In this document: in pieces, positions 43,338-60,150 of the stretch
Position numbering within the stretch: position 1 is the stretch's first letter
Layout: every line of letters begins with the position of its first letter
Source of the DNA: Oikopleura dioica
Taxonomy: Eukaryota; Animalia; Chordata
Direction of reading: 5' to 3'
Length of the DNA: 64,000 bases
Assembly: GCA_907165135.1 (NCBI GenBank)
Contig: OU015569.1
Location: forward strand, 6,076,001-6,140,000
Position numbers and translations under genes: made by a program
The notes under the pieces: model-generated
The model's database searches: none
Seen by the model: only the letters and a program-made list of their open reading frames with translations
What the model was told of the DNA's origin: nothing

Positions 43338-44058
43338 TTTCAACGATCAGAGTCAGGGGAGAACAAAAAGTTTGCTGTGACAGTCATTCTTAACGCAAAC
43401 CGGAGAATTAGCGAAGACAGCCAGAGCGACTACATCTCAGAGGACCTCTTCAATTTGATAAAAAATGAGGAAAAACGTCAAAGGAATTTGAATTGTCATA
43501 TTTTATTCTCGGTTATTTGGTTTCATTAAAAAGGTGTAGGGCATGCTTGCTCTGTAAGGGGTCAAGATGAGAAAAATAATCCTATGTAGACTTTGGTGAT
43601 GCACCTGGTTGGTTAATATATGAACGAAGATGGGGAAAAGGGTCGGTTGGCACGGTGGCGAGTGTTTTAGGTTACGATTTTGTCGGTTTTTTTATTTGTA
43701 CAATGAGTCCTAATAAAATAATAAGAAAAGGTTGTGGAGGAATTTTGAAAAGTGATATCTGTGATTAGACTTTTTATTTTTCTTCGAACAGACGCCACCA
43801 TGAGAGATGAGAGGAGTTGAACTTTGAGACGAACAAAAATGCACAAAAAGGCTAAATCACAAAATTCGCCGTGGCCGCGTATAATGTTTTGATGGTTTTG
43901 TTGGATGCCTTCCAGTTCAAATTTGAGGCGTCTGGATCCTCTGGAAATATTCTTAACATCGGGCAAACACTACAAATTTGAAGGTGAAAACATCCAAGGG
44001 CCTCCAGCGTAGAAAAGGGAGCCGATTTTCGATGAGGAAGGAGCTTCTTGAGTTGGAC

Positions 44059-45013
44059 TTATGATGTTTTGGCCATGTTCTTGACAGACATGAGGGCCTC
44101 CTTGCCGATGGCCTAAAAATAAACGTTATAACCATGATTAAAGTGATAACAAAGGAAGGAACTTTTTGGATGTCGGAAATGTATCATTAATTTAGTCTCG
44201 AGACGGTACATAAAAACCGGCTCAAGGTGGAAAAATTGAGTTCATCTACCACCCGTCAATTAACTTGCACAACATGGAAACGCACGAGTTACTCAAAAAA
44301 CGAGTGGACGAAAGAGAGAAAAAGGACTTGGCGATCGAGGGCACTTACGGAAAGAACGCAGACGAGGGCGTCTTCTTCAGCATCAATCTTGGCCTGGATC
44401 TCTTTTCGGACTTCGGGGTCGATAGCCTGGAGATCGTCTCGGGTTTCACCCTGATCGTCCATGAGGGTGACGAAACCTTCTTCGTCCATGTCGATAAGCT
44501 GCAATTCAGTTCGCTTGACGATTGGGCACTCCATGTTGTGGGTGGAGGGGCAGATATCTTCAAGCTTCTTGCCATCTAAGCGAATTCGTTAGGAAACTTT
44601 TGATTAAAATGAAGTTGAGGTGGAAAAAAACGAGTTGAATGTCTCGGGTGATTAGTATCAGAAAGGCACTAGGAGCCTCACCAATGTGGAAAGCAGGAAA
44701 TTACTATTGGCCGCAGATTAAGCGCACAAAAGAACTGATTTTTTTGATGAGCGCGGAGTATTAAATCCACGGCCGGAAATGATTAATTCGAAATACATGG
44801 AAAAAAGGGCTTACCGAAGATGTCGAGAGCGACCATGTGGACTTTAGCGTGGCCGTGCTTGCCAGTCTTGGAGGTGGACATATCGACGATCTTGCAGGCT
44901 TTGCCCTTGATCATGACGAATTCACCCTTTCGGAGAGCAGAGCACTGCTTTGGGTAGGTGAGGGAAGCTCCGGACTGCGTTCCTTCGAATTCGTAATCTT
45001 CGTGATCCGACAT
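44059..45013 (-). CDS. EIF5A: Translation factor eIF5A
   Basis: [14 protein letters not shown], hypusination site [22 protein letters not shown]; last exon [17 protein letters not shown]. Confidence 0.97.
44177..44307 (-). ncRNA. Intronic box H/ACA snoRNA (eIF5A last intron), predicted 18S pseudouridylation guide
   Basis: 131 nt hairpin-H(AGATGA 44247-44242)-hairpin-ACA(44182-44180); both pockets sit exactly 14 nt from their boxes and are complementary to conserved 18S motifs. Confidence 0.85.
44637..44774 (-). ncRNA. Intronic box H/ACA snoRNA (eIF5A first coding-region intron), paralogous 3' pocket
   Basis: 138 nt; 9-bp basal stem GGCCGTGGA/TCTGCGGCC, H box ATAGTA (44707-44702), ACA (44642-44640), pocket TTCCAC/ACTAA 14 nt from ACA. 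Confidence 0.8.
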
Positions 45014-58063: not shown

Positions 58064-60150
58064 CTAATCGAAGAGGCGGATTTCGGTCAGATATCGTCGA
58101 TTCTGAAATATAAATTTGTCTTTTTTGACCGTGGCCCTCAAGCGTTGGTGGTGTAATGGTCAGCATTGATGCCTTCCAAGCATTAGATCCGGGTTCGATT
58201 CCCGGCCATCGCATACTTTTTCGCCTCTCACCTGAGTGAATATAGCCATTTCTTCGTCAGACAACTTTTGAAAGTTCCAGTAGCTGAGTTCTTTTATCTT
58301 AAAATTTTTGTTCATTTCGTCTAGGTGAATTCCGTTGTAACACAGTCTCGGGTATTTCGAGTTTCTTTGTTGTCTCCAGTTTGGGAACTGTGACATCCAC
58401 TTCCAAAGCTGTTCGTACTGAACGAGGGATTCTGTGCTTCTCCAGTCAGTAGTCAGAACACAGATTTTCGCGCTTCCAGCAGCCTTTGGGTTCCAGTCCT
58501 CAACGCTCTGCTCAACCAGGCATCTCTCTTCGACTTGTTTAGATGCATTTTGTATGAGCTGTTTCGCCCTTTCGACGCTTTTAGCTGCAAAGGAATCATT
58601 TAATTCTGTAGAGTCAGCTCTTGGCAAATTAAAACAAATCCCTTGACTCCAAAATATTCCTTGTGAGAGTGCAGTTTGTCTTTGAAATGGTTGTAAAGTT
58701 TGAAATCTGCCCAAATTAGCTCCTGTAAGGCTGACTTAGCCTTCGCGGAGAGAATCGGTTTCTTCGTCGGATTCGAATTAAGTTTGAAATGAACTTATGA
58801 AAGGGTGAGACAAAGTGCCGCAGAAGACAGTTAATACTCATATCACCAGATGTCCAGCAAAACTTGAGCATGAAAATGGCCAACGAAGCGAGCATCTCCT
58901 CCATGATTAACACTAGATCGAACTCTTCGGATATTTTCTCGATCCATTGATCCGCAAGATACTCTATCGTATTTCTTTATTTTAATTCTCAAAAACTCAA
59001 ACCTGTTTTTTCCTTAGACCGTAATAAAACAGACGGATATCCGAAGAAATAAAACTGATGATTCATTAGAAACATGGAAGGAAGGGACTCGTATCCAAAC
59101 AAGTCCAAAAACTCATGCGGGCTCGCTAAAAACTCTTCAATCTCCGCTTTAAAATCCGGTTTTGTTTCACTTAGCGGAGATAAGAAATCAAAAAAATCTT
59201 GTAATGTCAATTTCTTTCTAATCCGTCTTGAATGATATCAGTAATCGCCGCAATGGCAGTATCATATTTGAGTAGTACATCCATGAGCTGATGAAATTGT
59301 CCTCGGGATTACGTAGAATAGAAACGGCGGAGAAACCTGGCTTCATGACTTTGCGCACTTCATCTCTGTCATAACGCAGGTGGACGAACGAGGCGTCGAA
59401 TTTTTGCGAAACTGGGAGATCTCTTCCTAAGTAGCAGTCATTCGCATTGAAGGGGCGAGTTCTGTTTGCGAACAACAAATTTCCACTAGAATCTTCACCG
59501 AAGAGCGCTTTTAGCTGATTGTTGTAGCTGAATCGCGCGATGATTTGGGCGACAGTTGTCGAACCAGTTTTTGATGTTTTCAAAAAGAAAATCTGCTTTT
59601 TTGGTATGCAGTCTTCTGGTGGGACAAGATCTCTTTCGTCGAAATCTTAATATAATTCTTTTGCACTTTTGCGATCACCAAAGCTTACCGTTTTCGTGAT
59701 CTAACGTGCATGTTGGAGCTACTGCCTTCGACAACTCAAGACTCTTTTCGCATGCTGACAAGGCTTTTCCTTAATCTCGTCTCAAAACCTGCTATATTTT
59801 ACTAAATTGTCGAACCTAAGTCTCGTTTTCGAATGCAAACGTGGTGACGAACATCTGGCAACATCTTCTTTATCTTCTTCGCCATTCCTATTTGACACCA
59901 AGGAAACGAAGCATAATCGCTATTGCAGCACCAACCGCCTTTTATTGTTCATTGATGAATTCTTTAAGTTTCGAAACGGAACTATTTTACAAAAATTATC
60001 GAAAGATGAATGAACTTTTTCATTGCCGCAAAATCCGTAGCATCGACCAGTTGTATAATTACACTTTGGCCGACAATTTTCATCTCCAATGACCTCGTAC
60101 ATATCCAAAGCCAAGTTCCCGATCGCAAATAAAGTCAAAATTCTCTTCAT
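58064..60150 (-). CDS. Galactose-3-O-sulfotransferase-like protein with an N-terminal Cys-rich module
   Basis: 5'-PSB motif FFLKTSKTGSTT, SILRNPEDNFISSW, FDLVLIMEE, DFKLYNHF; upstream exons give a hydrophobic leader and a Cys-rich segment. Confidence 0.75.
58142..58213 (+). tRNA. tRNA-Gly (TCC)
   Basis: 72-nt cloverleaf, anticodon loop CTTCCAA, T-loop GTTCGATT, downstream T-run terminator; one U-U mismatch in the acceptor stem. Confidence 0.93.

Follow-up and report, generated by a model that had tools for sequence, protein, structure and literature searches.

The second and last intron of the eIF5A gene of Oikopleura dioica encodes what is, with a probability that we put at about 0.9, a box H/ACA snoRNA of the canonical intronic type, about 131-134 nt long, in which one pocket is directed at U1192 and the other at U1295 of 18S rRNA. 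The gene lies in a stretch of 64,000 nucleotides, which we refer to as the window. A first-pass annotation made from the letters of this stretch had proposed a dual-guide H/ACA RNA with two 18S targets, and this reading is supported by the architecture of the element, its complementarity to the species' own rRNA, sub-threshold matches to Rfam families, and conservation together with covariation in relatives.

The host gene has three exons and was identified by reading the letters and by running Pfam per exon, with exons and read-through ORFs used separately and not as a joined protein. The exons matched IF5A-like_N (1.1e-28) and eIF-5a (2.5e-17), and the exon 1 ORF contains the hypusine-loop motif. 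As had been noted at first pass, the last intron is 236 nt long, with GT at 44348-44347 and AG at 44114-44113 on the minus strand, and it leaves 41 nt upstream and 64 nt downstream of the RNA. Introns in Oikopleura are typically small (35-90 nt), and in L016 and L018 the eIF5A gene ends with introns of just 45 nt and ~66 nt, respectively, supporting that intron 2 is unusually long here because of its snoRNA cargo. In the transcript-derived protein P0007 from a close relative, the end of exon 1 runs directly into exon 2, which in turn continues with exon 3 and 3' UTR sequence (frame-shifted in its final portion), i.e. both introns are absent. Thus, both introns are spliced out of the mature mRNA and the snoRNA must derive from the excised intron.

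Two other features of the gene were observed. In one clade (P0010, P0014; L016:2454-2498), the 45-nt last intron is in frame and without a stop codon, so that prokaryote-style gene callers run through it into exon 3; such read-through ORFs helped to locate loci, yet they warn about ORF records of this kind. Moreover, the eIF5A 3' UTR (window 43990-44058, minus strand; about 1760-1830 in L008) shows about the same conservation as coding DNA, with 82.7% identity between the window and L008 for exon 3 and UTR together, and a motif near AAAUCGGCUC recurs in the eIF5A UTRs of the far more distant L012, L016, L018 and L022. This motif may be a regulatory element.

Table 1. The eIF5A gene and predicted features of the snoRNA in its second intron (positions in the window)
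Feature	Position	Strand	Basis
eIF5A host gene, three exons	44059..45013	-	Reading of letters and exon-wise Pfam
eIF5A exon 1	45013-44815	-	
eIF5A intron 1, carries a paralogous H/ACA RNA	44814-44576	-	
eIF5A exon 2	44575-44349	-	
eIF5A intron 2, 236 nt, GT..AG, putative snoRNA host	44113..44348	-	
eIF5A exon 3 including TAA stop	44112-44059	-	
Predicted box H/ACA snoRNA core, 131 nt; 5' end possibly 44309/44310	44177..44307	-	
5' hairpin	44249..44307	-	MFE fold and covariation
5' hairpin, lower stem, 7 bp	44307-44301 with 44255-44249	-	
5' pocket, 5' strand UUGAGU, predicted to pair with 18S ACUCAA 3' of U1192	44291..44296	-	
5' hairpin, upper stem, 10 bp	44290-44281 with 44271-44262	-	
5' hairpin, loop	44280-44272	-	
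5' pocket, 3' strand AAUUGA, predicted to pair with 18S UUAAUU 5' of U1192	44256..44261	-	
H box AGAUGA (ANANNA) in hinge	44242..44247	-	
3' hairpin	44184..44239	-	MFE fold and covariation
3' hairpin, lower stem, weak, AU-rich	44239-44234 with 44188-44184	-	
3' pocket, 5' strand UUCCAC, predicted to pair with 18S GUGGAG 3' of U1295	44227..44232	-	
3' hairpin, upper stem	44226-44217 with 44206-44197	-	
3' hairpin, loop	44216-44207	-	
3' pocket, 3' strand ACUAA, predicted to pair with 18S UUAGU 5' of U1295	44192..44196	-	
ACA box (44182-44180) and 3-nt tail UUU	44177..44182	-	

The minimum free energy (MFE) fold of the element consists of two hairpins, with the H box AGAUGA and the ACA at the places originally assigned to them (Table 1). 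The AAUUGA strand starts exactly 14 nt before the H box and the ACUAA strand exactly 14 nt before the ACA, in line with the spacing of the first-pass annotation. The element therefore has the architecture of the H/ACA class, i.e. ANANNA in the hinge, ACA at the end and bipartite pockets within the 14-16 nt of the class. The apical loops, UUUCCAUGU and UUUUUAUGUA, do not contain the CAB box (UGAG) that marks H/ACA scaRNAs, and the best targets are in rRNA. The predicted 3' end at 44177, 3 nt after the ACA, is that of the first-pass annotation, while the 5' end at 44307 carries an uncertainty of about 3 nt, since both the Rfam alignments and the conserved sequence extend 2-3 nt further upstream, with GU at 44309-44308.

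The targets were predicted by scanning the pockets as bipartite guides, with the target U and the next base unpaired, against the species' own 18S, 5.8S and 28S rRNA (rDNA unit in L005). Each pocket had a single best match in rRNA: U1192 of 18S rRNA for the 5' pocket (12 bp, 6+6, one G-U) and U1295 for the 3' pocket (11 bp, 5+6, one G-U). The next best rRNA site had 9 bp with three G-U. The 13-nt target motifs named at first pass are each present once in the genome's own 18S. Shuffled pockets reached an equal duplex anywhere in rRNA in 3.7% (5') and 2.3% (3') of trials; therefore, complementarity alone is suggestive but not decisive, and it is conservation that makes the case.

In the species' own 18S, U1192 precedes by four bases the U in the GACUCAACACGGG loop, and we take that U to be at the position of the hypermodified P-site uridine (yeast 1191). 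The distance from U1192 to U1295 is 103 nt, and the same spacing is found for the yeast sites 1187/1290, the human sites 1244/1347 and the Entamoeba sites 1212/1315 (PMC3542256). Motif and spacing agree with the proposed identity of U1192 and U1295 with yeast Psi1187/Psi1290 and human U1244/U1347, both of which are known to be pseudouridylated in these two organisms (PMC5699541, PMC3542256). Judged by motif, by spacing and by the match of the guide to that of snR83, the sites would correspond.

In the proposed comparison with Rfam, made with cmscan at permissive thresholds, matches were obtained at 44177-44310 on the minus strand, in agreement with the coordinates of the RNA, but all of them were below the gathering thresholds: S_pombe_snR92 (RF01444) scored 25.6 bits (E 0.0016-0.012) against a threshold of 80, and snR83 (RF01264) scored 23.3 bits (E 0.0076) against a threshold of 75. 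The L008 ortholog scored 30 bits with S_pombe_snR92. The letters of the 3' guide agree with the consensus of both snR83 and S. pombe snR92. SNORA4 (RF00394) and SNORA36 (RF00340) matched neither the intron-2 stretch (E <= 10) nor the genome as a whole (E <= 1); for SNORA36 this is a weak negative, as its control also matched nowhere. The intron-2 RNA is thus predicted to work like the 3' hairpin of snR83, and by Rfam's rule it is not a member of that family. Across the window, a tRNA gene (58142-58213, plus strand, 62.7 bits) is the one feature that reaches a gathering threshold of Rfam.

Relatives were recovered using ORFs that start in exon 2 and run into the intron as protein queries, which led to similar ORF fragments in marine metagenomes and in a Logan assembly, and from these to contigs. 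Exon 2 is 97% identical in L006/L007, which are near the window, and 85% identical in the more remote L008 and L009. Identity between the window and L008 is 84.2% for the RNA block and 84.6% for exon 2, as compared with 53.7% and 55.2% for the intron flanks; between the window and L006, the RNA block is 95.5% identical and the flanks 65-67%. The conserved block in intron 2 coincides with the predicted RNA ends. Moreover, the close orthologs retain both the H box and the ACA, 97.3% of their cells are paired as compared with 33-44% in slid controls, and all stem changes but three keep pairing.

A covariance model, R1, was built from the window and the close orthologs. It matched eIF5A intron 2 in L022/L023 (46 bits) and eIF5A intron 1 in L024/L025 (46 bits), L016/L017 (37-43 bits), L018 (45 bits) and L012/L014/L015 (21-28 bits), giving homologs in at least five distinct relatives. 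No homolog was found in the intron portions covered by the cut contigs of L010/L011. In alignment A3, which contains seven two-guide homologs, 92.6% of the cells are paired and 25 of 31 pairs have changed on both sides; these counts are favoured by the fitting of A2 and A3 to the structure of the model. None of 500 shuffles reached either the pairing or the compensation of A3, and slid controls reached at most 47%. When the intron-1 paralogs described below were added, 89.1% of the cells were paired and 27 of 31 pairs compensated. Within A3, helices 1 and 2, which form the 5' hairpin, are 100% and 92.8% paired with compensatory changes in 5/7 and 9/10 pairs, respectively, helix 4, the upper stem of the 3' hairpin, is 91.9% paired with compensatory changes in 6/9 pairs, and helix 3, its lower stem, is 82.9% paired. 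Independently, RNAalifold recovered three of the four helices from the alignment, with 21 compensated pairs; it did not predict the weak and AU-rich lower stem of the 3' hairpin, which is the least supported element.

These data bear on the idea that a long, AT-rich intron has come to resemble an H/ACA RNA by chance. The fold differs from shuffled sequences only marginally (z = -1.9), and neither the H motif nor the ACA is long, both of which fit that idea. By contrast, it accounts neither for a conserved block with the same boundaries as the predicted RNA, nor for compensation that no shuffle equalled, nor for the recovery of homologs in several distinct relatives by a covariance model. The conserved block, the covariation and the RNAalifold result effectively refute chance resemblance, and we regard it as the least probable of all explanations. 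From the same comparisons, the block is shown to be under purifying selection, with invariant guides and compensatory changes in the stems.

The pockets had been expected to be conserved in orthologous introns, and the guide strands UGAGU, AAUU, UCCACC and GACUAA are invariant in all homologs, the seven aligned ones included, whereas the stems are almost wholly different. The H boxes of the homologs are in the same place and read AGAGAA, AGAUAA, AGAUUA, AGAAAG and AGAGCA, all of which fit ANANNA except AGAAAG (L022). ACAUUU is kept in L006, L007, L008, L012, L014 and L022.

In two clades (homologs at L016:2093-2229, L017:2076-2211, L026 near 855 and L018:335-465), the guides are perfect and there is no ACA at the canonical place. 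These homologs have UCA 14 nt after the start of the pocket and an ANA triplet at 16 nt, i.e. AAA in L018 and, in L016, AG|A across the 3' splice site. The 3' hairpin of the L016 homolog abuts the splice acceptor, and the guide ACUAAA is found where the branch point is expected. Separately, intron 2 of L012 contains an arrangement UUGAGU...AAUU...AGAAUA that was examined as a possible second copy and rejected; its spacing is 11 nt, it does not form a good lower stem, and L014, a near relative, lacks it.

The element could be a real H/ACA snoRNA with one incorrectly predicted target or one inactive pocket, for instance if U1295 were served by the paralog in intron 1 or if a pocket acted on another RNA. 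The scan for targets covered rRNA only, chance duplexes of equal length arise in 2-4% of shuffles, and two copies within eIF5A carry a U1295 guide, so that this site is doubly covered. However, both strands of both pockets are invariant amid stems that vary freely, no second rRNA site is near as good, and pseudouridines are known at both sites in yeast and human (PMC5699541, PMC3542256). We therefore consider a wrong target or an inert pocket improbable. Even less probable in our view is a conserved structured intron element that controls splicing or expression of eIF5A and forms no stable snoRNP. Its intronic position, in a gene that is highly expressed, would suit such an element, and the unusual conservation of the 3' UTR makes non-coding regulation of eIF5A plausible; but regulation does not require the joint presence of ANANNA in a hinge, ACA at the end, pockets at 14 nt and invariant complementarity to two known 18S sites. 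Moreover, the element switches between introns 1 and 2 among relatives, which fits cargo better than a splice signal.

As a dual-guide snoRNA, the intron-2 RNA would combine functions that are separate in yeast and human. Its 3'-hairpin guide (UCCACC ... GACUAA) is common to yeast snR83, S. pombe snR92 and human ACA4/SNORA4, and guides of the snR83 type target yeast 1290 and human 1347 (PMC3542256, PMC5699541). The partner guide in yeast snR83 serves Psi1415 (PMC5699541), whereas that in the intron-2 RNA is predicted to serve the equivalent of 1187. The predicted target of the 5' pocket, i.e. yeast Psi1187 and human U1244, is served by yeast snR36 and human ACA36/36B (SNORA36) (PMC3542256, PMC5699541), with which the intron-2 RNA has no detectable homology in sequence or structure. 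The two sites have separate guides elsewhere, snR36 and snR83 in yeast (PMC5699541), as had been claimed, and ACA36/36B and ACA4 in human (PMC3542256). The hosts also differ: human SNORA4 is hosted by EIF4A2 and human SNORA36A by DKC1 (PMC8759569), while in O. dioica the 1187-type guide shares one RNA with the 1290-type guide within eIF5A.

The suggestion of a reshuffled guide combination in an unusual host was therefore correct in part. The pairing of guides does differ from that in yeast and human, and the host is neither EIF4A2 nor DKC1; however, eIF5A is a typical kind of host, and the combination is common to all relatives in which the two-guide RNA was found, with eIF5A as the carrier in each of these clades. 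Like typical intronic snoRNAs, which occur one per intron on the sense strand of genes for the translation machinery and have paralogs in other introns (PMC4696412), the RNA has all of these properties. Movement of snoRNAs between hosts and same-host paralogs in different introns are well described (PMC4696412). A literature search found no paper joining eIF5A, intron, host gene and H/ACA snoRNA, which is a weak negative; searches on target switching of snoRNAs found nothing, and those on the targets of S. pombe snR92 returned only false matches to 'snR9_2'.

Intron 1 of the same gene contains a second H/ACA RNA (window 44637-44774, minus strand), which has a lower stem GGCCG/CGGCC, the H box AUAGUA and an ACA followed by UUC. 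This paralog is conserved in L006, L008 and L009. It resembles the intron-2 RNA in its eIF5A host, strand and class and in having a 3' guide for U1295 (11 bp), but unlike the intron-2 RNA its 5' pocket is without a convincing rRNA match (best 9 bp). The 5' pocket differs between the window and L008/L009, and the apical loop above it (UCAUCAAAAAA...GUUCUUUUG) is conserved. Overall, the paralog scores 17 bits with R1. A DNA search of the O. dioica genome with the 131-nt RNA returned only the RNA itself, and R1 at E <= 1 returned only the intron-2 locus; that the intron-1 paralog did not surface genome-wide can be attributed to its divergence.

Five of the recovered loci have the two-guide RNA in intron 2 of eIF5A, whereas more distant relatives have it in intron 1. 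By clade, the window lineage and L022 carry it in intron 2, and three or four other clades carry it in intron 1. This distribution suggests that a two-guide ancestor may have been duplicated within the gene, after which the copy in intron 1 would have lost its U1192 guide. The two-guide RNA itself appears to be an old resident of eIF5A genes of the appendicularian type. In L022, in which the two-guide RNA is in intron 2, eIF5A intron 1 contains a short hairpin (CAUCAUCAG / CUGAUGAU; L022:440-475) with UUAUCCAC in its loop, and UUAUCCAC has the letters of L022's own 3'-pocket guide. This hairpin may be a relic of an intron-1 copy. A wider scenario, to which we give slightly less than an even chance, is that the two-guide RNA is ancient eIF5A cargo in tunicates of the larvacean type that was duplicated within the gene and subfunctionalised, the intron-2 copy being the sole guide for the U beside the P-site hypermodified base and the intron-1 copy a redundant U1295 guide with a conserved apical loop.

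Intronic snoRNAs are usually released by splicing, debranching and exonucleolytic trimming (PMC4696412). The snoRNA in intron 2 would similarly be transcribed within the eIF5A pre-mRNA and, after splicing and debranching, exonucleases would trim the intron back to the snoRNP, in which dyskerin, Nop10, Nhp2 and Gar1 would be bound to both hairpins together with the H box and the ACA. Next, the 5' pocket would flank U1192 and the 3' pocket U1295 of 18S rRNA, in each case with the U and the next base unpaired and 14 nt from the box, and dyskerin would convert both uridines to pseudouridine. The genome encodes the dyskerin-specific DKCLD domain. On this reading, the RNA would be expressed and assembled into an RNP, and U1192 and U1295 would be converted to pseudouridine.

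Host mobility and same-host paralogs of snoRNAs have already been described (PMC4696412), and translation factors are typical hosts. The value of the finding is mainly in annotation. It is a new annotation of a familiar kind of gene, and the understanding of how H/ACA guides act is unchanged. It also provides a small and clean example of a stable association of a snoRNA with its host, of movement between the introns of one gene and of guide loss after duplication. A predicted guide can now be assigned to two universally conserved pseudouridines of the small subunit in a chordate in which the snoRNA set is almost unannotated. In a homology-based survey, about 34 snoRNA families were reported lost in O. 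dioica, raising the question of whether they are truly lost or have diverged (PMC5006418). The intron-2 RNA is a concrete case of divergence, in that function-level equivalents persist at about 25 bits as compared with the 75-80 bits required. If the scenario of an ancient cargo of eIF5A is true, the massive 'loss' of snoRNA families reported in Oikopleura (PMC5006418) would at least partly be divergence past homology detection, and the modification of two uridines in the decoding region would be coupled to the transcription of eIF5A throughout an animal class.
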